Origin: Bugula neritina
Taxonomy: Eukaryota > Animalia > Bryozoa
Direction: 5' to 3'
DNA length: 64,000 nt
NCBI GenBank assembly: GCA_964035545.1
Contig: OZ037767.1
Span: 28,598,628-28,662,627, forward strand
Each line of letters starts with the position of its first letter. The stretch's first letter is position 1. A program made the translations under genes and the position numbers. Positions 1 through 63,422 of the stretch are shown here, piece by piece. A model generated the notes under the pieces. The model was not told where the DNA came from, ran no database searches, and saw only the letters and a program-made list of their open reading frames with translations.

Positions 1-3000
1 TTATTGTAAAAACACCTAGTAAATTCTACTCACCTCAAGACTATCTGATCAATGGCAAAGCATAGTTGGCAGTTCCTATATGTTTAATAACACATGAGGC
101 CATGGATGCAGTGCAGCAGTTACACCTACTACTTTTGTATGTATTGCATATTCTGTTACTATGAGGCGTTACCTAATTTCTAAATAAGTCTGTTTTACCT
201 TTAAAAGTATATAATTTAAAACACACAAAAATTGTACCTTTCCAATAGGGAAGTACAAACTCGCACCAATTACTTGCAAAGTTGCAGCATTTAGCACTCG
301 GTTCAGCAGAATTTTGCAGCATTTAAAGTTGTCTGGCTGTGAAATAATGCAACTGAGTTTCAAACCCAAATATCAAACAAACATTATAAACCCAGGCCAA
401 GCAACAATTTACATCTCAGCAGCCAATGCCTAATGACCATTCTTTCATTCAAACTTTTCTTTACTCAATGAGAGTTTAGTTAGCAGGAATACAGTTGAAA
501 GAATCAAACAAATGACTGCAGAACTTCTTCTTGTATTGTGGATGTAATTTAATGGTGGCTAGTCAACTTTTTGGTTCCAGTGCCACATGCAGGACTCTTT
601 GATGCAATTAATTCCTTTAATATGCAAGTAGTTATATCGATCACATCCAACTGTCTCATAGCTACCCTGGGACTTCGTACAACTTCTGCTGGTAGATTTG
701 AACACTAAATAATTGAACTACTACTAGGAATAATAAATAGAGGACTAGAGCTACTATATAATGATTATTGCTACTGTTGGCATGGCAGTGGAGATGCCAA
801 CCTACAGGTGAGACCTGTCAAAACAAATGACAACCTCATGCAAGTGCCAGTTAGCTGCTGAACGACCAAAGCATCTTCTGTAGGCTCCATCAAACTCCAA
901 TTATCTTGTAACAAGTGAAATAGATATAAATTAGCAAAAATTCTGTCAAAATGAAAGATTACCAGTTTCTCTCCTGTGAATTATGGCACTTAATGTACAG
1001 CATGTCTGGATACCGCAGCTGCATTGTGCCAAAGTAAGCTCCATCAGTTATAAAATAATAAATATGACAGTCAGTAGTCAAGAATGACTTTTGGCTCCAA
1101 CTTATGACAAATGTCCAGAAACGGAAAAAGTAGCAATTATAGAAATGAATGTATTAATAGTAAAAGGCATTAATTTCAAATTCCATCGTAAGGCAATACA
1201 ACTTGGACCAAATGACATTTTTATTGTAAGTTGTAACTGGTTTGATGAGTAGAGTAATTATAATCACAATTATTCAATGGCTACAGGAAATCTCTGGGAT
1301 GATGGATTGTAATAAAATATGGTTTGTCATCCCAAATCTGCATTTTTCAGCATCAAATCCTAATTTGAACAACCCTCTTAAGAGTTGAGCTGCATTCCAA
1401 TACTACGATATTTTTATCTTTCTATTATGATATAATAACACTAGTAGTGCTACCTTATATATGAACTGCCTATAATATACTTGGTGCTCATTTAACTTGC
1501 AAATATATTCTTCGTATGCATCTGCAAAGTAGTCTTAGTTTCAGTCTCAGTCTGAGAGGTAACGTAGTTAGAATTTAGGGCTAGGTATGACTATTCTTTT
1601 TAATTCTTTTTCAAACAAGATTTAAAATCCATGTTATATACTAATAAACTTTATGCTCGTTATACAAAGTGGAATATATTTGAAGCAGTTTATGGTTTTG
1701 CATTTTTGCCAAAGCAATTATTTCAAATTTTGCAAAACTTGCTTTTTATTTGATGGCTACACCTCTTCATCACCGTAGGCATTAGCGAAGATCACAGGAA
1801 GGTGCTATTGATGTATTATCTTTACGTCTAAGAGAAAAAAGAGCTCGCAGCCTTTCAACTGCAGAATAAAAGCAGATGCGAATGATTTATTATAGCCTGG
1901 CCATGCCCTACCAGGCACATTGTTCAACGGCAAGCATACATATACCTTTCAACACAATATAAGTTGGCTATGAGTTTGAGTAAGTATCTTAGAAAGAGTA
2001 GGTGTACTTGGAGGAAGCTGGCTTCTAGAGTCATAGTGTTACACATTATAGACGTCAACACTGCTGCAACTACCCACGCAGTATAATTAAGTGAACAATG
2101 TGTCTCAAACTGCATTTATCAATGGCAGTTTAATAGTGGTAAATGGTAAGCAAGCAAACGTTTCCAGCTACTGGTGTCGTCCATAGAGTGGTTCAAAATT
2201 TTTAGTCAAAATTTCAATTTTATTAAGTTGAAAATTTCACAGAGTTGTCTTGCATTGTAAAAGTTAAAATGATGGTTTTCTTGAGAATTTCAGATTATTA
2301 GTCAAAGGGAATGATAAATTCTTGTAGATAAAGGCCTTTAATTATTACCTTCTTGATTAGAAATCTTTGAATGAAGATTCATTTAAGTATAAGCTTTAAA
2401 TTTCATAATCCTATTAGCTACTTTTCTCAAATACTGCTTTCACTCAATTAACTTTGGGGGTGCATCCTGCTACTAAATGACAACAAATAGTGGTTAAGTG
2501 AGTCATACTGTTGGAAAGTGATTTTCAGTCTCGGACTGATTTCAGTAAGGGGAGATAGAATCAGTGGAATGAACTAAATGCCAGTAGCCTACTAAATGTA
2601 TAAAAGGACTGGCTGGTCTAAAAGACCTGGCAAGAACTTACAGAAATAAACAAATACATTCAGTAATGGTTCTGCACCAATATTTTATAGTAATTTATAT
2701 AAAGCGCTAAAAGAAATAGATTTGGTTGCAATAATGCTAAGATAGAACACTTGGTATATTATTACAGCAAATTGACCAATGACTTGGAAGAAGATAGGCT
2801 TAGTTCAAAGGCACCAGGTGACAATTCAAGTGAGTTCCATCATAAAACCAACTTTAAATGTTTAAATGGTAAGGGCTGATGAAATCCTTGTCTGGGAAGA
2901 TTTTAAAGAACATATTATAGCTTAAAATTGCAAATTTCTTTACCAAACTCTCATGGCTTAAATTTGCATAACACTGCAGACCTGTAGACTGTATTTTATT

Positions 3001-3496
3001 CTATAGCTATTATTATAATAATAGGATAAGTTGTTAGATGCAATATTCCCAGCTTAATTGAAATTGTGCCATTTAAATATTATATAACAAAGAGTAAACA
3101 GTTATGTATCTCATCTTATTCAATTTGTAAAACTGTAACTATAATCCTTCTTTGGTCAATAGAAGCTTAATGTTTTCTTTCTGGGATCTAATACAATATC
3201 ATTATCCAATAAATCCAATAAAATAAACACTACTTAACTACAATAGTTTCTATGGCTCTTATTTACATTGACAACAACAAATAGATGCTACGATTGAGCA
3301 GGCTAATGCAACGGACTACGCGTCATTTATGAGGCCACGCCTAATTAACTATAAACTAACCAATCAAATTAAAAATTATTTTACTGTTATCAGGGCGCTA
3401 TGCTAAGCCTGACTACGCTGTATTTTTCATGTAGCAGGCTGCGGCAAACGTCCAACTTATAATTTACCAGAAAATACGATCAACACCGTCATCATT

Positions 3497-5661
3497 ATGC
3501 TGGATGCTAGACCTTCTACGACTAACTGGAGGTATCAAAGAAAAATGGACATCAAGCCTTCTGCTGAACTTAAAAAACGTCTTTTCAACGAGCCTCAATC
3601 TGGTGAAAACCTTCAATCGGATATTAATAACTTACTTGGGGAGATACAGCAGGCCGACCAGCTTCGTTGGAACTTTGATTTTACACGCAATGTTCCCCTA
3701 CCAGGCCGGTACAAATGGCAGCTTGTAAGCTCATCAAAGCATTTAGAAGAAATGAACAATAATGATGGCGGCTCCAAGACTCCCCAAACTCCTTCCAAAT
3801 CTAGATTTTCCAAACCTGAATCCAGTGTAGCAGCAAGCCCTAGCACACAGAGAATTATATCAGGTAAGAGAGCCCTCAATTTCTTTACGTCATACTGTTG
3901 AATGAAATCATTCAATTTTAATTTAATGCGGCCATAAATGCTGCTATTGTTGAAGCAACACCCTAACATACCAATATGGATATGCTGGATACTGATGGTA
4001 GTTAGTTATTTGTGCTGTTGAATTAGTATTACTATTAGGACGTCCAGGCACTTGAGTCTTGGAATTGAGTAAAACGTGTTAAGCTGTAAAAACCTCATCA
4101 AAACAGTGGACTAGCATGCTAATATTGGCTAATTGATGGGCTATATTAAAATAGTCATAATGTTAGTTAGATTGGCCATTGGTATAGCCTACCAATACCA
4201 TCATGGAAGTTTGAGAAGGAAGTCTCCAAAATAATATTGATAACTTTCAGTTTCCTCAATGCATATATTCATTTTCATTTAGTCTCTCAGTGTTGAAAAA
4301 GATATCCATTCGATCTTAAATTGTTTTGGAATTGAAAATAATATTCTACTCCTGTCAGCATTTCAATAAATGTAATGCATTGTCATCCATTTCAAGTTCA
4401 AACAATCTGGAAGTATAATATAGGCAGTAAACTCATTTATAAACTTATGAGTTATTTCACTTAACCTAGTCATACAGGATTTTTTTAAATTGCTATCATC
4501 TCATTAATGTTATCTGCATATATCATGAAAATATTTTTTCAGTATCTACAACTTTTCACAACAGAGTTAGTCCAAAAATCCACCAGCATAATATTCTGCC
4601 GAATATACTGAACTATTATATGCTGAAGTCATTTGATTAGTATTACTATTTAGCCAATATTAAAAATGTTTCCTTCAGTGGAAGTAGTCTGCAACTGTGG
4701 TGTGTTTGGCCTTGAAATTGAAATTGTTGATCAAGTATTGAATAAGTATTAAGTGATTAAAAGCCGCTCAATCTGCTAGCATTTCAGTTAGTCATGGTTG
4801 GTTACGACATATTTATTATCATATACAAATAACCACCTATTTGTTTCTAATGCCGGCTCTAATCTACACATTCAAATAGATTTGAATTTAGCGCAAATCA
4901 GTTTGTTTGTCTTCGACTATAATATTAGCACAGCATTATTTACTCGAGTAAACAACGCCCTATTCAACGTTTCCAAAGATGGCTTGGCACGTTGCCTGGA
5001 TTTGCGCTTGAATAGAACAATAGCCACAGCTTGGATTATCAACGAAATTATAGATTTGAATAATTATCATTCCCTAATCTGCCATTTTCATTGGAGGATG
5101 AAGGGAGCCCTTTTTATAGATATTTCAGACTCACAGGTGGTTTTGGTTATCTGTTTTCTCACCCGGAGTGTTGCAACTGCTGTCTACATAAAACTAGGTG
5201 TGTGTAGTATTTGTAACCAAGTAGTATTTGTAACATATAGTTATACAGAGCACACAACTGGTAAAGTGATTACATAACAAAGTGTGTCATTGACTTGCTC
5301 CTAGCCTGCATTATGTAACCACCATAGATAGGTTTTACTGATGGTTAGTATTGGTCTATCAGTCTGGCAGGAATGATTGTTTACTAGCCACTACCCGCCA
5401 TAATCTGGTTAGTTTTCGAACCCATGACAGAATACCCACTGGCTTTTGTTTGTAGAATTTTTCCCTCTGAAGAAAAGAAGCTCGCCTTCCACACACGGTG
5501 ATGAAATAAAAGTGAAGAGGGCGAGAGTTTCATCACCCCTCCTTCGGAATCACGAAGCTAAGCCAACCGTGTCCAGGGCGTTGTCGGGCACATTCAGGCC
5601 CATAAAGTCGTTGAGTTTCGAGAATGACGGAGCAGACTGTGATATCTACGAATCTATTTAA
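3497..5661 (+). CDS. Cip/Kip-family cyclin-dependent kinase inhibitor (CDKN1/dacapo-like), ~190 aa
   Basis: Exons 3497-3863 and 5456-5661 (GT-AG, phase 1, 573 nt). CDI domain: Cy motif KRLF and RWNFDF...PLPGRYKW. The splice creates a PIP box QRIISEFF followed by a basic PLKKR. Family is clear; p21 vs p27 vs p57 orthology cannot be assigned. Confidence 0.9.
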
Positions 5662-7134
5662 TGCCTACAGTGAGTATTAAATAACTTGTACTTGAGAGGT
5701 ACATGGTGCATATTCCCTAATATACTCAAAGCATCATAACCCTTAATGCTGCCCTCACCAACAATGAGGACTTTAGCGGCAGCGCTAGAAGACGGCATGC
5801 AGTAATCGCATTTCTGTGGTTGAAGGTTGCCTGCACAATAACCACAAATCATGCTTTCTACTCTAAACACAAACTAATGATCAATAATCATAATAATATT
5901 TGCTGACTAGTTTACTATAGCAGCTGCCAGTGGTTTACTCCAGTCAATAGTAACTAATGTAATCAATAGTTTGTGTAGGCTGCCTGGCTGGGGTTAGTAG
6001 TTAGTAGCCGTGAATTAGGTCAGCGGGCATGCTGACCTCACTTTGATAGACTTTCCATTATATCAGATTGAATTACAACTGACTGTATAATTATTACCAT
6101 AACCTGCGAAGGCTGCATTGCAGCTATCAAAATACACGTAACTGTAGTAACAGCATGCCTAGTGGATACTCTGTCTGCATTTAGATGAATTCATATTTAT
6201 TATATCTTTATTTGCCATCTCTAACGGAACAATTTGAATATAAACCAGTTGGAGGCAGCTGCCTGCTTAATTATACAATCAAGTTTAGCTCGGGTTCCCA
6301 TTGGCTAATGCCACTCTAAGTTGCACATGCTCAGGGGGTGTGTTTATAAATTCAAACAGCCCTCCAATTTGACATAGCATAGTTTCTCGCGTCTGTTTTG
6401 ATTTTTATTGTACTTGATGCTTAGCATATCATAGGGCTCATGTTAGCTTTCAATCCTATAGCAAACAGAAGCTCCTAGATTGTGAGTCTTTTGTTTGAAT
6501 CTAACCGAATGGCTTCAATTATTTGAAATTGAAAGGGCCGCTCTCTTTGTGCACTGTTTGAAATAGATGCAACTTTACAACCCTGTGCTATAACAGAGGC
6601 ATCTAAACTAATACAGCCTCTGAGAATAATTAAAACAACATTTGCATTAGCCGAGCCTTTCAATATAATGGATACCTGTGCATGTAATCAAAGATTAGAT
6701 ATTAGAGCTGACCCAGTTTATAATTGGCCTTTTGTTGCTCTTATCTGCATGCCTTTAGTCATGCATACCCAGAATTTCTAAGCAAAAGCGTAGTGACCTA
6801 GAAAACATTTGGGTTATGCTGGCTGAGCCAACACATGCTGATGTAAGGCTGGTAGTAAGATAATAGGAGCTTATCTGGTATTTACGGGCTGTTATATCGC
6901 ATAGGTAAACTCTACACTCAAGATAAATATATAGATGCAGCATAAGCCAGCGTCATATTGAGTAGATAGTCTATTGAGAGCTATCAGGTGTTCCACATTA
7001 CCAACCAACCAGAAGTGGGTCGGCTGTTTAAAAAATGACAGTTATGTTATTATATCAAACCACAATTTTATTTTTAGCTCGGGTGATTGCCAACTAATAT
7101 TATTGTAACTAATAAATTATTCTTTTCCTTGTAG

Positions 7135-51942: not shown

Positions 51943-53193
51943 ATGTTGGTGCTTGTAGAGAAAAAAGAATATATGATGGCTTCTGAAGTTAAAATTGAGA
52001 GTATATTTTTTTGCCAGTTTGACCCCAAAGAAGGGCCACAGATTACAGATCAAGTTCCTGAAAATAAATATACAGTTATTTCAGATAGTTTCCATTTTAT
52101 TCAAAACTATTTGATCCCTAGAGAAGAACTTCAACAAAAGCTTATTACTGTCAAAGCGTTTGGATTCAAAATTCTTGGCTGTCCAGTCCATGTGAAAAGC
52201 CCTATCTACTCACGAAATGCCTTCATCTTCAATGTTTGCTTTGTTTTTAAACCAAATGCCAACACCTCATGTTATGAATGGGTTCTAAAAAAACTTGTTC
52301 AGTACTTCACTGTTCTTGAAATAGAATCAAACTATCTCAGTGCCATTTCAGATGGAGTCTTGAAAGAAAAAACGCCAACAAAAAAATATTATACTTCTCT
52401 TAAAGATGTTTTGGAACAAGTTTTGCATAAGTTAAATACATTGGGTTGCTGTGCCATTCCTATTGATGAGGCAAACACTATACACCTAAAGTTAATGCCC
52501 AGTTACGATGTGCCTCCAACTGTACGTGATCACGATGTGCCTCTGTTGACCTTTAAACTCGAAGAGTACCATTTCCAGCAATGGGATTTGGCCACCCAAC
52601 AAATTTTACCTCTTATAGACGGTTTCAAACATGTATCATTGATTGCTGCTGAAGCGGGAAAGGATGTGCAATTAATTAAAGCGTTGATAGAAAACCTGCT
52701 TTACTTCAAGCTAGTTAAAATAATACCGATTTTCCAATATTCTAATGTATACATGGTTACTTCAGATATAGATAAACTCTACAGATGCAAAGAATTGCAA
52801 CAGCAATTTTTGAGAGACGTGCAAATGTGTAGCAAAGACTTACCCAACTTTGATAGTGTTATAAAAGTGTTTTCCTGCTTTAATCATGGTACTATGGCAA
52901 CAGTGAAACAGGTAGCTATGCGCCTTCAACCGCACAAGCATCTGAATATTGACATTAGGAAGTTGATTCAGTTTGGTGTGGTGCACAATTTTATGCGCCG
53001 TATTCATAAATACCCAATACGCATGGCTGGGTCAGCGGATGTCCCTCCACTTGATGCTGTAGGAAGCCAAATCATGAAATACTCTGATGGAAAGCACTCG
53101 TATGATGAAATTTGTTGTGCCCTGAGTATGAGCTATGAGGAACTAGAGGCCCGAATTGAAGAAAACCCAGCCATACTTCTGTGCTGGAAGTAA
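51943..53193 (+). CDS. NPRL2: GATOR1 complex subunit NPRL2, single coding exon, 416 aa (or slightly shorter from the downstream Met)
   Basis: Motifs IESIFFCQFDPKEGPQITDQVPE, YSRNAFIFNVCFV, WDLATQQILPLIDGFKHV, PIFQYSNVY, RKLIQFG...RRIHKYP and DGKHSYDEIC...CWK. Acceptor TTATTAG lies 5 nt before the ATG. Confidence 0.95.
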   Translation: MLVLVEKKEYMMASEVKIESIFFCQFDPKEGPQITDQVPENKYTVISDSFHFIQNYLIPREELQQKLITVKAFGFKILGCPVHVKSPIYSRNAFIFNVCFVFKPNANTSCYEWVLKKLVQYFTVLEIESNYLSAISDGVLKEKTPTKKYYTSLKDVLEQVLHKLNTLGCCAIPIDEANTIHLKLMPSYDVPPTVRDHDVPLLTFKLEEYHFQQWDLATQQILPLIDGFKHVSLIAAEAGKDVQLIKALIENLLYFKLVKIIPIFQYSNVYMVTSDIDKLYRCKELQQQFLRDVQMCSKDLPNFDSVIKVFSCFNHGTMATVKQVAMRLQPHKHLNIDIRKLIQFGVVHNFMRRIHKYPIRMAGSADVPPLDAVGSQIMKYSDGKHSYDEICCALSMSYEELEARIEENPAILLCWK

Positions 53194-53963
53194 TATAGAG
53201 CGTATAACCTGTGCTATGCAGAGTTTTATATACTGAGTTTTATTTTTTAAATATTTTTGTACTCTTTTATAGCATGTTTAATAACATACAACATGTATTA
53301 CATTTCTGTAATAATATATTTATTTAATACTATAATATATAATTGAAGTTGAACTAGTGATTTCTCAATATAAAAGTGAATGGTTCCGATGTATTTAACA
53401 CTTGCAGGAAAGTAACTGTAATTAGAAAATGATTATTTTATCAATTGGTATGCAATACTTAGTAGTTTAATAAAAGAGATTCCACTATCTCATTTGTAAC
53501 TGCACCTCTAACACGTATTGCATGCATAAGTGTGTTGTTTCGTTGTAGTATAGTTATGTAATTAAATGTTAGTGATACCATGTATGAGTACAGGGTATGC
53601 TTTGCAAGAAGCTGTGTTGAATTAAAGTGGTGTTAATTCAAAATTGTCTTCTCTCGAAACTAGTAAACCCTGGAAGTTTACAATTGCCACCATAGGTTTT
53701 GAATGCTCGTCATCTGTACAGATCAAAGACTTGTGCAGTTGATGTACATAGTTCATAGCAGCAATATCACGCACTTTATGACTGATCACAAGGCATGCTA
53801 TATGCTTACAGACTAAATAGTGCACACAAAAAGCCACCACCTTCTTACAGACATGCTGGTCGACCTTGCCATTAGGCTAGCATGCTGCGACTGCCTGATG
53901 CACCCTTTCTCAGACGGGAGTTTTTCTTGGAGGGCTTCCAAGCAATACCAAGTCTATTGCAAT

Positions 53964-54934
53964 AGACCATGTAAGATTGGTACATTTAGTACCTTGAACC
54001 AATTTTAGATACTCACCACTATAACTTATATAAACTTCTGCAAGTTCAAATGCAATATGCATACTTCTAGGAAATAGTTGTGCAAGCTTTATTACATGCA
54101 TTATTTTATTTCATATCTTAAATTTATGAATCATGAGTTCATTTTTCAAAATGTTTAAATTAAGTGCTTAAAAAATGCATTTAAAGAATGTATTCCTGAA
54201 AAATTACCCTGGAGCAGCTTGACCACAACCCCAGCTGTTCTGGCAAAACACATTTAATGACATTTTTATTGACATAGTGGTAAATGGGCTGGTTGTTTTT
54301 GGCAGTTGGGTATCCACACGCGGTTCTGCAATTTTACACAATTCTGATTGGCTGGACTCTACATGACCAGCTAATGATTGTATCTGATTGGCCTAATAAT
54401 GCATTTGCATTTGAAAATGTGGAGTTTTATATAAGTTATAGTGGTGATATTTTAGAGTTGGTACACGCCCCTTTTTGGTTAGGTTTTATAGTCTGATCAT
54501 GCTGTATTCATCTACAACACTTCAGTGTATGGGAAAATTATTAGTATTACGAAATCTGTTCTGACTTAGTTTGTAAGCAACTATGTATAGGCAGTTATAA
54601 CTTAGGGTGATTTCATCAAAAGGCCTTAGAATATCAAATCAACCAGTGCTGCTACTTGGTTGTATTGTAAAGCAGTAGTGAGAGCATAGCATACTAGCAC
54701 AGTCACTGAGCTGCAATGACAGTGGCTACACCAAACTTATCAGTTCCATTATAATATCTTATGTAAGGCATGTAAAAACACTAGGCTAGTCTCTGTTAGT
54801 ATGTAGAGCAGTAGCACAGTTACAGCAGTCACACCACTCTACCCTGTCTACCAAACGCAGAGGTAGCAATAATGATAATCATTTCATGATTTAGTTTTAA
54901 ATCAATGCATACTACTAAATACATTCTCATAGCC
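53964..54934 (+). repeat. Left terminal inverted repeat (971 bp)
   Basis: Reverse complement of 58923-59891. The identical 70-aa ORFs 54284-54496(+) and 59359-59571(-) confirm the mirror symmetry. Confidence 0.93.
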
Positions 54935-55972
54935 AACAGTAAACAGAAAGCAAATGAATCACATCACAGAGCTTGCTGACATACTCTACCTAATGGGAAC
55001 CAGGAATTTTAATGTGAAATTCGTTGTTGCGACAGCATGAGTGAATAATACTGTGGGTGTCTTGCAATCATTTACAGTTCAACCAATGGCCTATATTTAT
55101 GTTAGATGGGTTAGGAATAAATAGCAAATTGAAACTTTTATGTGGTACTTTGTGGTATTATCACACCAGAGTTGATGAAATAACATTCATGCTGTAAATG
55201 TAAAATCTGCTAAGGATATCACTTATGTTTTGCTTGCTATTATAATACAAATACCTTCTGTTAGAAACTTACAACAGAAACTAATTTAGAAAATATATTT
55301 TCCCCAGCGTACGTCATTAGTTTGTACCATACTCTGGCATGCTGGTACTAACACTCATCTCATAACAAGATTTAGTGGATTATAGTAGCTACACAAAAGG
55401 TGAGTAACTATTACAACAATAATTAACTAAAGTCAGTCGCTGAACATGTGATTTCTGTCTACATTTGGATAGTTCTGTAGCAAAGTACAGAAATTTATTG
55501 AGCATATGCGTCTATGTATTTTAGTAATAGATAAAAATTTGTTAGTCTCTCACTTTTCGCATTTCCAACTAGATCTGGCTAAAAATAGATTTATTTAAAT
55601 CAGTTTACTGTGAAGGGCTGAGATGTTTGTGAGCAACTATTCAAATGCTGTTCTTATTGAATGCACAACTTTTTGAAAACAGGTGAAAGTTTCAGTCAAC
55701 AATGGCTACTATATCAAATTTCCTCAACTTTTACTTACTCAAAGTCACCAATATTGGCTACATTAATTACTGGCTTTAGCACAAAACTGTGTTCACAACT
55801 TATATTCCAAAAGATCTGTGATATATTCCTCAACTTTACAGCATGCCAGCATTTATGTTGGGGGAAAAAAATCTTACTACCTTTTGTAATACACATTTAG
55901 TTATATCAGGTTTTGTTCTGGTAGGAATCTAATCCAATACTGAATATTTTGCTTGGCATTTTACAGATTGGC

Positions 55973-56664
55973 ATGAGAATCTGCGCAGTTAAAAACTGTC
56001 ATAATGGAGATTATAAACTTCAAAAGTTTCGAAAGAGCAATCCTGGACAATTGAATCCTTTTACTCTTTATACGTTCCCACGAAAAAATGAGCAACAGCG
56101 TCACGACTGGTGTGTTTTAATAAATCGGAAGGATGAATTAGGAAATTTATGGACTCCAAAACAGCGTTCTAGAGTTTGCTCCTTACATTTTAAAGATGGT
56201 CAGCCAACTGAGCGAAATCCAAACCCAACCCTTCACTTGGGATACAAATGCACCAAAACTTATAGTTCAAGAGGCACAGAAAACAGTGGTTTTGACAAAA
56301 CAGCTGGAAAAAGAAAAGAACAGAAAAAATATTCAACAAATGTAAAGCAACAGAATTCATCTTACAGCCATCCTTGTAGTCAAACTTCATTAGAGGTAAC
56401 TGAGCAAGAAGAAACTTTGCTAGCTAATGCAAAAAAGAGTCCTAGGCGTTTAAATATTGGACCAAAAGTTATAAGAAAAAGCTCAGAATTTTCCAAGTAT
56501 AAACAAAAGGCAGCTGTTAGGAAAATTAAAGTTTTCAAAACGTTTACTACAACAGATGAAAGAACCAAGTTTTACACTGGAATACCTACACGATCTCTAT
56601 ATTTTTCTTTAGCAAGGTAAAAGTTTAAAGTTTATTACCGTACTATTAAAATTACACACACATT

Positions 56665-56714
<50 letters not shown>

Positions 56715-57953
56715 TTTTTATTTAAAAAAGTCTCACCCTCCTATATAGTTTCATACAGTAATCAACTGCACTAAAAATAAATAAAATTAAGTAAAATATA
56801 ATATATTGAATTAAATCATCATTAAATATAAATGTTGTAAGTTTAAGGTGTTAAAAATATGTTTACCCATCTCAAAAATTGAAAATTTTATGCATCAAGG
56901 CTCAACAGGCAACGGTGGCATTAAAGTTACTGCTGTGTGTTTAAAATAAATAGCAACACTTATGAAATATTTTAAACATAAAATATTATAAAGCAATGAT
57001 AGTTAGCACAATTATTTGAGGCTATAACAGTTTTTATTCCTTTTTTATAATTATTAGACACAGATTAAGCTAAATGAATATAAACTGAGTAACTAAATAT
57101 ATGTTGAACATACACTGATATAATTTCCAGCTGTTAATTTATTTTTTATTTTTTATATAGATTTATATGCCCAAAGATGAGGTGTCTTACTCTCAGAAAA
57201 AAGTTAACAAGACAAGATGAGCTTTTGTTGGCTTTGATGAAGCTGCGTCAAGGTCTGCAGTTTCAAATGCTTGCTGACCTTTTTTATATTTCTAGAATGC
57301 TAGCAAGCAAAATCTTCAAAGATACATTAACCATTCTAGCAAAAGAATTAAAAAATCTCATTATTTTTCCCCCTAGAAAGAAATTGAACACTCCTCTCAA
57401 TTTTCAAAGTCAGTATCCCAACATTCGGTGCATTATTGATTGCACAGAAATATTTATATGCAAGCCACAGTCGAAGTTGGCACAAGCCTTGACGTGGAGT
57501 GAATATAAAAAATCAAATACAATCAAATACCTTATTGCAATCACACCCAGAGGCACTATATGCTTCCTTTCACCTGGAATGGGAGGTAGGGCCTCAGACA
57601 AGTGCATAGTTAATGATTCTGGCTTCTTGGGTCTCATAAACCCAGGTGATGTGGTCATGGCAGATAAAGGCTTTATTATTGAAGAAGAGCTAATAGGAGC
57701 TGGAGCCAAGTTGGCCATGCCACCTGGGAAGAGAGGCCATTCTCAAATGACTAGAGCGCAGTTACTGCAAACTAAGTTGATTGCTAACCTTAGAATCCAC
57801 GTTGAAAGAGCAATAAAACGGATAAAGGAGTTTAATATTTTAAATAGTCCTGGGGGTGTAAGCTTACTGTTGGCACCTCTTTTAGATAAGATAATGGTAG
57901 TCTGCTGTGCTCTCTGTAATCTGCAGCCACCGTTGGTAACCGATGAAGTGTAG
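55973..57953 (+). CDS. THAP-domain DDE transposase (Harbinger/ISL2EU type), ~478 aa, two coding exons
   Basis: Exons 55973-56616 and 57161-57953 join in phase 2 (GCAAG|GT...TATAG|ATTT), giving 1437 nt with no stops. THAP C2CH: CAVKNC...FP...W...RVCSLHF. Also KFYTGIP; HTH LLLALMKLR...LADLFYIS; and catalytic IIDCTE, ADKGF and RIHVERAI. Confidence 0.92.
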
Positions 57954-58922
57954 CACTTTTATAATAATATTCTTCTTGATGTGCTATTGTATACGCATGT
58001 GCTATACCACTATGCTTTGTAAATAAAAGTCTAATAGTATTATACTTGGTCATATCTGCTTGCCTCAATGATTGTTGAAAAGGATTTTGGGTGAAAGTAA
58101 ATGGCAGCTCAGACGTGATACTCATTTTACAAAATGCTAACTTATGTGTACATAATATTCTGTTATATAGTATCAATTTTGTATGCAGTCAGTGCTGAAA
58201 TATAATGCTTTCATTTTGGTGGTATCGGCATTTTTTCTGTAGCTATCATGTTGCATCACACAATATGAAAATTTTTTCAAGCCCAATGTTTAATGACCAT
58301 TTATTCTAACATTCCAAATTATTAGGAGAGAGCCTTTGTATTTTGCTCAACTGACTAAAACATGTATTGAAAACTCATTAGTAAAGTTATTGCATTAGTT
58401 TCAGAGCTAAGTACATATATTTCATCCAGCAATGGCTTGAGGCTGAGAAGTTCAACTTGAATATCACTTATACAAAAACATGGCAAATTGCATAAAACAT
58501 TACTTCACAGTTAAAAGAAACTAGACTATATTGTCCCATGCATGGCTGATGTCATTACATTTGTAGAATAATCATGCTGTTTAGCTAAGTAAATCGTATA
58601 CAAGAAAGCGTTATCAACATGGTACCATGGTGATAATACCAACTAACAATATAGACCCACATGCAAGGCACTACATGCTAATCCTCATTTTTATACAAAA
58701 TGTCTACATTATCTATTGCTAAAAGCTGTGCATTTAAACTCAATGCAGATGAATATGTGACTGAGTAAAAAACTGCTGTTCTACAAATTTAAAATAAAAT
58801 AGTAGTGGGTACACAAGCAAATAATTTACGGTTATAGCGTAGGCTAATGCATTTGTAATGAGCATGTAATATAATTTCTTAAATAATTACATTAAAGTAA
58901 ACTGAAGCACGCAAAGTAACCA

Positions 58923-59891
58923 GGCTATGGGAATGTATTTAGTAGTATGCATTGATTTAAAACTAAATCATGAAATGATTATCATTATTGCTACCTCTGC
59001 GCTTGGTAGACAGGATAGAATGGTGTGACTGCTGTAACTGTGCTACTGCTCTACATACTAACAGACTAGCCTAGTGTTTTTACATGCCTTACATAAGATA
59101 TTATAATAGAACTGATAAGTTTGGTGTAGCCACTGTCATTGCAGCTCAGTGACTGTGCTAGTGTGCTATGCTCTCACTACTGCTTTACAATACAACCAAG
59201 TAGCAGCACTGGTTGATTTGATATTCTAAGGCCTTTTGATGAAATCACCCTAAGTTATAACTGCCTATACATAGTTGCTTACAAACTAAGTCAGAACAGA
59301 TTTCGTAATACTAATAATTTTCCCATACACTGAAGTGTTGTAGATGAATACAGCATGATCAGACTATAAAACCTAACCAAAAAGGGGCGTGTACCAACTC
59401 TAAAATATCACCACTATAACTTATATAAAACTCCACATTTTCAAATGCAAATGCATTATTAGGCCAATCAGATACAATCATTAGCTGGTCATGTAGAGTC
59501 CAGCCAATCAGAATTGTGTAAAATTGCAGAACCGCGTGTGGATACCCAACTGCCAAAAACAACCAGCCCATTTACCACTATGTCAATAAAAATGTCATTA
59601 AATGTGTTTTGCCAGAACAGCTGGGGTTGTGGTCAAGCTGCTCCAGGGTAATTTTTCAGGAATACATTCTTTAAATGCATTTTTTAAGCACTTAATTTAA
59701 ACATTTTGAAAAATGAACTCATGATTCATAAATTTAAGATATGAAATAAAATAATGCATGTAATAAAGCTTGCACAACTATTTCCTAGAAGTATGCATAT
59801 TGCATTTGAACTTGCAGAAGTTTATATAAGTTATAGTGGTGAGTATCTAAAATTGGTTCAAGGTACTAAATGTACCAATCTTACATGGTCT
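58923..59891 (-). repeat. Right terminal inverted repeat (969 bp)
   Basis: Mirror of the left TIR; by eye it differs by ~6 substitutions and one 2-bp indel. Confidence 0.93.
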
Positions 59892-61235
59892 ATTAGTAAT
59901 TCTTCATTGCAAGGCTCCAACAATTCTTTCAAAGCCAGCCATTTGTTTCAAGTATATAGTATTATAAAGGGAGACCCAGGATAAAACTGACTTCAATTGA
60001 CTAAAAGTTCCAGTGCATTGCATAGACGCAATTCCCTAAAAAGTAGGGTTACAAAATCTCTGTTTACCTATTGAATTAACATCTAAGTTCTTGACATTTT
60101 AATTTCTGCAACTTCGTACTATAGAAGAGTTGCACCAGTTATATCAATCAGAAAACAGCATTGGTAATCAATTAAAAACCTGGGAGCATTCCGCATTTGC
60201 ATTTATAATAGAATAATTATGGCATTCATAACATTATTATGTAATATATGTTCAACTCTTACATGCAGGGCCATTATATTTGGATAGATTAGTGTAAATG
60301 ACACAATTAAATTAAAGCTTATGTTGTATTTGTATTTTATTAGTGAATAAAGAAACAGCCACAGTTGAGAATATGGTGTTGATAAAATAACAGCATTATA
60401 AAATATATAAAAATATGGCATATCTTTCAGCTATAAATTGACTGATTGTGGTGATCTTTTTCAACAAACTATGACCACAAAAGATAAGATAACTAAGACG
60501 AGCAACTAGCTGAAAGAGCCATCAACAATTGAGCTTCAAAATATGCACATACCACTTGGACTCTGAAAGTTAACTGTTTACAGTAGTAATAAAAAATTGG
60601 TTGATAAAATATCGAGTTGTGGGAAATGCTGCCATATTAAATGGCTCAAGTCGTCTCCCACAACAACATATGAAAATTAAACTTCTTTTTCCACACGAAA
60701 AATGATACATCTTGGAACTAACAGCAAATTAATAAACTACAGATGCAAATAATACAAGAAATTGCTGAAAGTTAATCTAATATAGTTATTAAATATCTAG
60801 AAATTAAATTATAAACCTTTTCACATAAATATAACACATCAACGGAAATAAAATACTAAATTGAAATAGAATGTATTTGTAGGTTGAGTTACAATATTTC
60901 ACACTAGTACAAGTGTCACTCGTGTATGTAACTAATAGAATTGGTAATAACAGCATTAAAAACCCGCTGTGGATTATAATAGGACACCGGTTCCAACACA
61001 AACTGTACAGACAGACATATAACAGTCACACGTCTCATACTTTAGACTGTGATTCTAAGCCAAAATAGGCGGGTCTTTCTTATGCCCTAAATAAAATTTT
61101 GCTCAAAGTCTAAAACACCATAAATTGATCTCTTTACAGTGATCCGACCTGCCACAATGGCGGCAGCATGAGTAGCTATTGCCATGCTGCATCTCTTCTA
61201 TATATCTTATCTTTTCAGCAACGCCCAACTGCGTT

Positions 61236-63277
<2,042 letters not shown>

Positions 63278-63314
63278 CTGAAAACAGAAGAGAATGAATT
63301 GATTAGTGAATATC

Positions 63315-63422
63315 TTTGGTATATTGTATATAGAACCTTTGGTATATTATATATAGAGAGCCTTTGGTATATTATATATATAGAACCTTTGGTATATTAC
63401 ATATAGAACCTTTGGCATATTG
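63315..63422. repeat. Short minisatellite (AGAACCTTTGGTATATT + variable TA), ~5 copies
   Basis: Visible tandem copies. Confidence 0.8.

Follow-up and report, generated by a model that had tools for sequence, protein, structure and literature searches.

The ISL2EU transposons of the PIF/Harbinger-ISL2EU-Spy (PHIS) superfamily duplicate an AT within an A-AT-T target (here and below, hyphens within target sites mark the insertion boundaries); they encode a THAP-HTH-DDE transposase together with a second gene, that of a YqaJ exonuclease, are confined to animals, and in a published survey had terminal inverted repeats (TIRs) of 6-259 bp that usually started with GG (Han et al. 2015, PMC4482050). 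Here, we analyzed a window of 64,000 nucleotides from the bryozoan Bugula neritina (contig OZ037767.1, positions 28,598,628 to 28,662,627 of the forward strand), which averages ~34% GC and in which positions 53964-59891 form a transposon of 5,928 bp with inverted ends of ~970 bp each. A first-pass annotation had taken this element for a composite of the bacterial Tn10 kind, built from two inverted 531-bp modules, possibly mobile by themselves, on either side of a transposase gene. Our analysis leads us to consider it likely that the element is a young member of a large ISL2EU family of this genome, a 5.9-kb derivative of 9.3-kb elements, in which the 531-bp unit is an integral part of the TIR and the inner end of that unit is a relic.

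Identity of the element and structure of its ends

Judged by the membership features that we tested, the element is an ISL2EU transposon and thus of a known type, because its flanks read AAT and ATT, its transposase combines THAP, HTH_Tnp_4 and DDE_Tnp_4 domains, and a YqaJ open reading frame (ORF) is present in its full-length 9.3-kb relative. The flanks of the window copy, ...GCAAT-AGACC and GGTCT-ATTAG..., fit an AT duplication, and AAT precedes all 61 family ends examined (56 collected first and 5 later). The A-AT-T target, the domains of the transposase and the YqaJ gene of the full-length relatives are what this family has in common with the elements surveyed by Han et al. (PMC4482050). 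What is new with respect to known ISL2EU elements is the length of the TIRs, their AG ends and the flipped terminus embedded in them. Typically, though not by definition, ISL2EU TIRs measure 6-259 bp and start with GG, whereas that of the window copy measures ~970 bp and starts with AG; across the family the TIRs reach ~970-1,075 bp, about four times the published maximum. The window copy differs further in having no YqaJ gene. Membership in the P superfamily (Galileo, or a P-type, THAP9-like element) was ruled out by the DDE_Tnp_4 catalytic domain and the 2-bp AT-type flanks.

The repeat search delimited an inverted repeat at 53961-54792 / 59063-59894 (832 nt), prolonged as 54792-54934 / 58923-59065 at 97% identity. 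In a direct comparison, the left and right TIRs differed by 6 substitutions and one 2-bp indel over ~970 bp, and not at all over TIR positions 1-728, which include the whole 531-bp unit. A second inverted repeat lies within each TIR (53995-54055 / 54405-54465, 61 nt at 79%); with one gap allowed, its arms of ~68 bp each extend over TIR 32-99 and 436-502 and match at 56 of 69 positions. Both arms contain a perfect 22-bp core (coordinates in Table 1), which has 257 matches with <=2 mismatches in the 216-Mb genome, compared with 1 for the reversed control. The outer end of the unit is AGACCATGTAA, and its inner end, on the opposite strand, is AGACTATAAAA. As single-stranded DNA the unit folds into a long hairpin (z -5.2), and it contains only ORFs of <=70 aa, none with a Pfam match. 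The 8-mer TTGGTACA occurs just four times in the 64-kb window (53977, 54458, 59390 and 59871), always in the TIRs, where the two copies in an arm, at positions 14-21 and 495-502, have the same orientation.

Much of the first-pass description is confirmed by these comparisons: the repeat search and the arm comparison reproduced its positions for TIRs, arms, cores and ends, and its view of a eukaryotic THAP-DDE transposon with kilobase TIRs and an AT duplication, mobile by its outer ends, agrees with the ISL2EU assignment. It had also asked for further long-TIR copies and had allowed for an assembly artefact behind the inverted duplication. Such copies exist, among them a full twin at C2:15409488-15415432, and the same TIR architecture recurs at dozens of different loci, which excludes the artefact.

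The transposase gene is split between a THAP ORF (55949-56620) and an ORF with the HTH_Tnp_4 and DDE_Tnp_4 domains (57177-57953). A two-exon model of 478 codons joins them through the junction codon AGA, which restores the frame (...SLA-R-FICPKMRC...) and is also open in the 9.3-kb copy at C7:6554030-6563318 (hereafter the C7 copy). In the Pfam scan, run on the exons separately, the DDE_Tnp_4 profile was matched over its full length. Exon 1 has ~91% amino-acid identity to the C7 copy; exon 2 is 100% identical to that of the C2 twin and 97% identical to those of three 9.3-kb copies, with a dN/dS of 0.27 against the C7 copy, calculated from small counts. The element looks young and is probably still transposase-competent.

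Derivation from two-gene elements and evolution of the arms

Three 9.3-kb two-gene copies are present in the genome, at C7:6554030-6563318, C8:2186243-2195527 and C1:21302304-21311548. The window element corresponds to the C7 copy, as assembled from fetched loci, minus positions 1017-4274: its positions 1-969 match C7 element positions 1-1016, and 970-1118 match 4275-4422. In the C7 copy, a gene that reads leftward and encodes a YqaJ domain (E 2.1e-18) lies in the stretch that is absent from the window copy, and in the 9.3-kb relatives both genes diverge outward from the centre. By this alignment the window copy is a one-gene derivative that arose by gene loss from 9.3-kb two-gene elements, and not a complete member of the family. 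It agrees with these elements in the TIR architecture, including the 531-bp unit, in exon 2 and in the AAT flanks, but it has lost 3.26 kb with the exonuclease, and its first 243 bp follow a 3.5-kb family instead. The C2 twin aligns without a break across the deletion junction and has flanks different from those of the window copy, which indicates that the 5.9-kb one-gene form moved after the deletion. Its presence at two loci bears on a possible requirement of transposition for the YqaJ exonuclease in cis.

Evolution of the arms within a copy is concerted: between the window copy and the C7 copy, 80 differences are fixed in both arms, as against 7 sites at which the arms of one copy are discordant. 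Along the TIR, the window lineage is a mosaic. At positions 1-243, all 18 informative sites agree with the abundant 3.5-kb non-autonomous family, whereas the sites at 764-907 follow the 9.3-kb family, which suggests exchange among family members. Because its first 243 bp match the 3.5-kb and not the 9.3-kb copies, the window lineage is a plausible source of transposase for the former. The 3.5-kb copies (e.g., C8:4410624-4414198) contain a partial internal inverted duplication, with element positions 4394-4893 reversed beside 3749-5928, and past position ~620 only one of their arms matches.

Two individual copies stand out. At the 3.5-kb copy C3:2502017-2505517, the flanks C3:2501787-2502016 and 2505518-2505747 form a perfect 230-bp inverted repeat that occurs nowhere else in the genome, so that the palindrome continues outside the transposon into unique DNA, owing perhaps to fold-back copying past the ends or to an assembly artefact. 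The 257-bp flank of the same copy (C3:2502017) was considered as a MITE (miniature inverted-repeat transposable element) family that might provide empty sites, and was rejected as unique in the genome. At C1:14654820-14671564, match coordinates suggest that ~7.5 kb of other DNA, probably a nested insertion, interrupts the TIR of a family copy near position 596.

The 531-bp unit and its inner boundary

In the search for solo 531-bp units, we used the unit and the inner 440 bp as BLAST queries, counted the occurrences of the 22-bp core, and looked for patterns that span the unit or its junction (the inner end followed by ATT, by GAT, or by any 9 nt and then W or S). Neither BLAST, for which solo copies with AT duplications had been the expectation of the first-pass annotation, nor the core census nor the junction patterns yielded a solo copy in the genome among the candidates and matches listed. 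The inner end with its junction occurs 84 times at <=1 mismatch, and all 46 exact inner ends run on as G(A/T)T(C/T)A(T/C)GCTG, the sequence of the inner TIR. The inner end followed by ATT, as expected of a solo copy in A-AT-T, was not found in the genome besides GTT variants of the ordinary junction, and the inner end is preceded by ATC, not AAT. The 47 units with exact cores stand nearly all in +/- pairs at element ends, the paired ends in the fetched loci giving element sizes of 2.1 to 9.3 kb, and every core match inspected, among those listed, lay within a full or rearranged long TIR. An alignment of 56 TIRs showed no identity step or breakpoint at 531/532, where conservation is continuous; the mosaic boundaries of the window lineage fall near 250 and 760, not 531. 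Elements bounded by inner ends, or other products of inner-end use, were not seen among the copies examined.

Several candidates for solo units were rejected: C3:19649093 belongs to the right end of a 3.5-kb-type copy, C1:15642446 is an old rearranged fragment, and the six loci with a single core are long TIRs of a different subfamily. The idea that the unit is swapped as a block was dropped for want of an identity step at 531, and its assignment to a MITE family, which its structure would fit, found no solo copy to go with it. Since the 531-bp unit is not found alone, the element is not a composite in the style of Tn10. The analogy of the first-pass annotation is in fact inverted, as its "modules" have no coding capacity and flank a central transposase gene, so that assignment to the Tn10/Tn5 type fails. 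Independent mobility of the modules likewise finds no support in the solo search, in the continuation of the exact inner ends or in the alignment around 531. In all subfamilies found (9.3, 5.9, 3.5 and 2 kb), the unit appears as an integral part of a ~1-kb TIR.

The nature of the inner boundary emerged from two sister families, B (C5:8897012-8904541; exon 2 with 88% amino-acid identity) and C (C8:1294859-1298963), which have only TIR 50-258 in common with the window family, at ~81%. Positions 9-98 of the B and C outer termini, when inverted, align to TIR 436-525 at 66-67 of 91 positions, with a local score of 51-56, whereas shuffled sequences scored 25 at most. Over the last 31 nt of the inner end, 20-22 of 33 positions agree with the B/C terminus (p<=0.006), but only 12 of 31 with the active outer end of the element itself (shuffle p 0.5-0.7). 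The inverted alignment identifies the inner boundary as a near-complete flipped copy of an ancestral terminus. Thus, the first-pass view that the unit lies between two inverted, terminus-like sequences is now backed by stronger evidence than before, and judged by its sequence the unit is built like a mini-element with two ends.

Family B also has its own tip flipped within the TIR, at 368-402, though this copy is weaker. In the distant family D the terminus is not repeated internally, and the layout is also absent in family C; a terminus plus flipped terminus as a general ISL2EU design was therefore rejected. At two loci, C3:15327509-15327563 and C2:28843942-28843996, termini of the B/C type stand back to back with a 3-nt spacer (CATGGTCT-AAT-AGACCATG and CATGGTCT-TCT-AGACCATG), representing either adjacent insertions or junctions of abutted ends.

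According to the explanation that we prefer, the transposase would recognize the outer TIR, roughly its first 250 bp including the conserved 22-bp core, as the known behaviour of the family suggests. Constraint is confined to the outer part of the TIR, to judge from the stronger conservation of the outer arm and from TIR 50-258 being all that families B and C have kept in common with it. The transposase would cut at the AGAC termini and insert the element into A-AT-T with duplication of the AT. A 3.26-kb deletion beginning at the inner edge of the left TIR removed the YqaJ exonuclease gene. At the inner boundary, the terminal ~100 bp would have been duplicated long ago in inverted orientation, and the homogenization between arms that keeps the TIRs alike would have placed the duplicate in both of them; this flipped terminus would no longer serve as an end. 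The relic could have originated from one intra-TIR inverted duplication during repair, or from a short two-ended element that was captured and then copied from arm to arm.

Some points weigh against this explanation. The inner boundary is a near-complete flipped terminus that includes the AGAC, at an offset symmetrical to that of the outer one, which makes a historical short two-ended element a live alternative. The core matches listed were 100 of the 257, the BLAST step scored the best 40 candidates, and the solo tests need a well-preserved inner end and miss old, decayed solos. No empty site was found with the one flank tried, which is unique in the genome, and the AT duplication is read from flank motifs and the literature. 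What we say of transposase activity, of its binding sites and of a connection with the 3.5-kb family is inferred.

The alternative that survives best is that a complete short element once stood beside the transposase segment on one or both sides and was copied from arm to arm, its inner ends decaying since. We regard it as unlikely, even though the inner copy covers nearly the whole terminal 100 bp and keeps B/C-type sequence that the outer end of the same element has lost, and although both termini of the unit face outward like those of a complete mini-element. The arm-to-arm copying that it calls for is documented in the window family, the palindrome of one copy extends 230 bp beyond the element ends into unique DNA, and the weaker flipped tip of family B also speaks for it. 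However, no such MITE with A-type ends was found in the present genome; pairs of B/C-type termini, among the 100 of 238 listed, stand ~3 kb or more apart and include no MITE; an AT or AATT footprint is missing from the inner boundary; the segment inward of position 531 has no termini itself (no direct matches); and a single intra-TIR inverted duplication during repair accounts for the same data. A specific form of this capture, which likewise strikes us as unlikely, would have fold-back repair copy the short element across, giving a MITE-flanked family ancestor of which TIR 436-531 would be the fossil; the copy with the 230-bp palindrome would then show the same process still going on.

A function of the inner arm, as a second, oppositely oriented transposase-binding site that pairs or bends the ends or as an inward promoter, is quite unlikely. 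The 22-bp core is identical in both arms despite 20% divergence of the surrounding arm sequence, TTGGTACA is restricted to the TIRs, and CTGATTGG (twice), ATTTGCAT and TATATAA follow each other in promoter order. Read inward, this series corresponds to the CCAAT, octamer and TATA elements of a Pol II promoter; it is mirrored in the right TIR, and its CCAAT boxes are kept across the family in the 56-end alignment. Yet the inner arm, with 85% among 12 subfamily representatives, is conserved no better than the remaining TIR, the best-conserved segment being the outer arm (94.4%). Subfamilies found at several loci have deletions of 18-21 bp or core substitutions in it, families B, C and D lack it, and the putative start would lie 1.5 kb upstream of the transposase ATG. 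We judged the TIR an unlikely promoter of the transposase gene also because both genes of the 9.3-kb relatives point outward from the centre, so that a TIR promoter is not needed.

That each 531-bp unit is now, or was until recently, an independent MITE, with the 5.9-kb unit using the outermost two of four usable ends, is barely credible: the unit does lie between a terminus and a flipped terminus copy, has the perfect core in both arms and can form a hairpin typical of MITEs, but no solo unit was seen among the 46 exact inner ends, an ATT flank is lacking at all 84 near-exact ones, all units inspected lie within long TIRs, the inner end follows ATC and not AAT and is unlike the active terminus in its terminal 31 nt (12/31), and no inner-end products were seen.

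Feature coordinates, surroundings and other known systems

The features of the element are collected in Table 1. Upstream of it, at a distance of ~770 bp, an intronless 416-aa ORF (51943-53193, plus strand) contains an NPR2 (nitrogen permease regulator 2 / NPRL2) domain (E 2e-84). Downstream, 62167-62290 and 63314-63421 hold microsatellites, (AT)46 and (AC)15, and a 23-bp tandem repeat of 4.5 copies.

Table 1. Features of the 5.9-kb ISL2EU element, in window coordinates
Feature	Position	Strand	Basis or remark
Left AT of presumed 2-bp target-site duplication, context A-AT	53962..53963	.	GCAAT-AGACC
Left TIR, 971 bp	53964..54934	+	homologous to positions 1-1016 of the TIR of the 9.3-kb relative
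531-bp unit, outer half of left TIR, between terminus and flipped terminus copy	53964..54494	+	
Outer arm (TIR 32-99), with 22-bp core 54013-54034	53995..54062	+	
Promoter-like motifs, inward: CTGATTGG (54344-54351, 54384-54391), ATTTGCAT (54403-54410), TATATAA (54428-54434)	54344..54434	+	read from sequence, putative
Flipped ancestral-terminus copy (TIR 436-531): inner arm and inner "end" AGACTATAAAA, core 54426-54447	54399..54494	-	
Deletion junction relative to 9.3-kb relatives, ~3.26 kb absent including YqaJ exonuclease gene	54934..54935	.	C7 alignment
Transposase exon 1 (THAP)	55973..56616	+	Pfam THAP E 8.9e-10; ATG, frame and GT donor at 56617 checked
Intron, GT...AG, 544 nt, with (TA)22 at 56667-56711	56617..57160	+	
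Transposase exon 2 (HTH_Tnp_4 and DDE_Tnp_4), stop codon included	57161..57953	+	Pfam E 6.6e-12 and 2.4e-46
Right TIR, 969 bp; its 531-bp unit 59361-59891; cores 59408-59429 and 59821-59842	58923..59891	-	
Right AT of presumed target-site duplication, context AT-T	59892..59893	.	GGTCT-ATTAG

The tempting reading as a eukaryotic Tn10 gives way to that of a known two-gene transposon type from which one gene has been lost. The insertion sequence (IS) units that flank Tn10 and Tn5 encode the transposase, exist and move alone, and have usable inner ends. The window element resembles them in its inverted flanking units, its four end-like sequences and the movement of the whole by the outer pair, but its units are non-coding and not found alone, and their inner ends bear no sign of use.

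The long concerted TIRs, each with a fossil flipped tip, make this family a good natural system for studying the origin and upkeep of very long TIRs. Long, internally repetitive TIRs are also characteristic of Foldback and Galileo of Drosophila, of which Galileo encodes a P-type transposase. These elements and the window family have in common internally repeated TIRs of kilobase size and a multitude of foldback-like derivatives without genes, whereas the window element differs from Galileo in its DDE_Tnp_4 transposase of the PIF/Harbinger type, its 2-bp AT duplication and a TIR free of tandem subrepeats. The subterminal repeats of En/Spm (CACTA) elements and the inverted repeat/direct repeat (IR/DR) ends of Tc1-like elements provide another parallel, as they too place extra copies of end-proximal sequence inside the end region. 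Those copies are short binding motifs of 12-30 bp; in contrast, the window family duplicates one segment of ~100 bp that includes the tip, in inverted orientation and under poor constraint.

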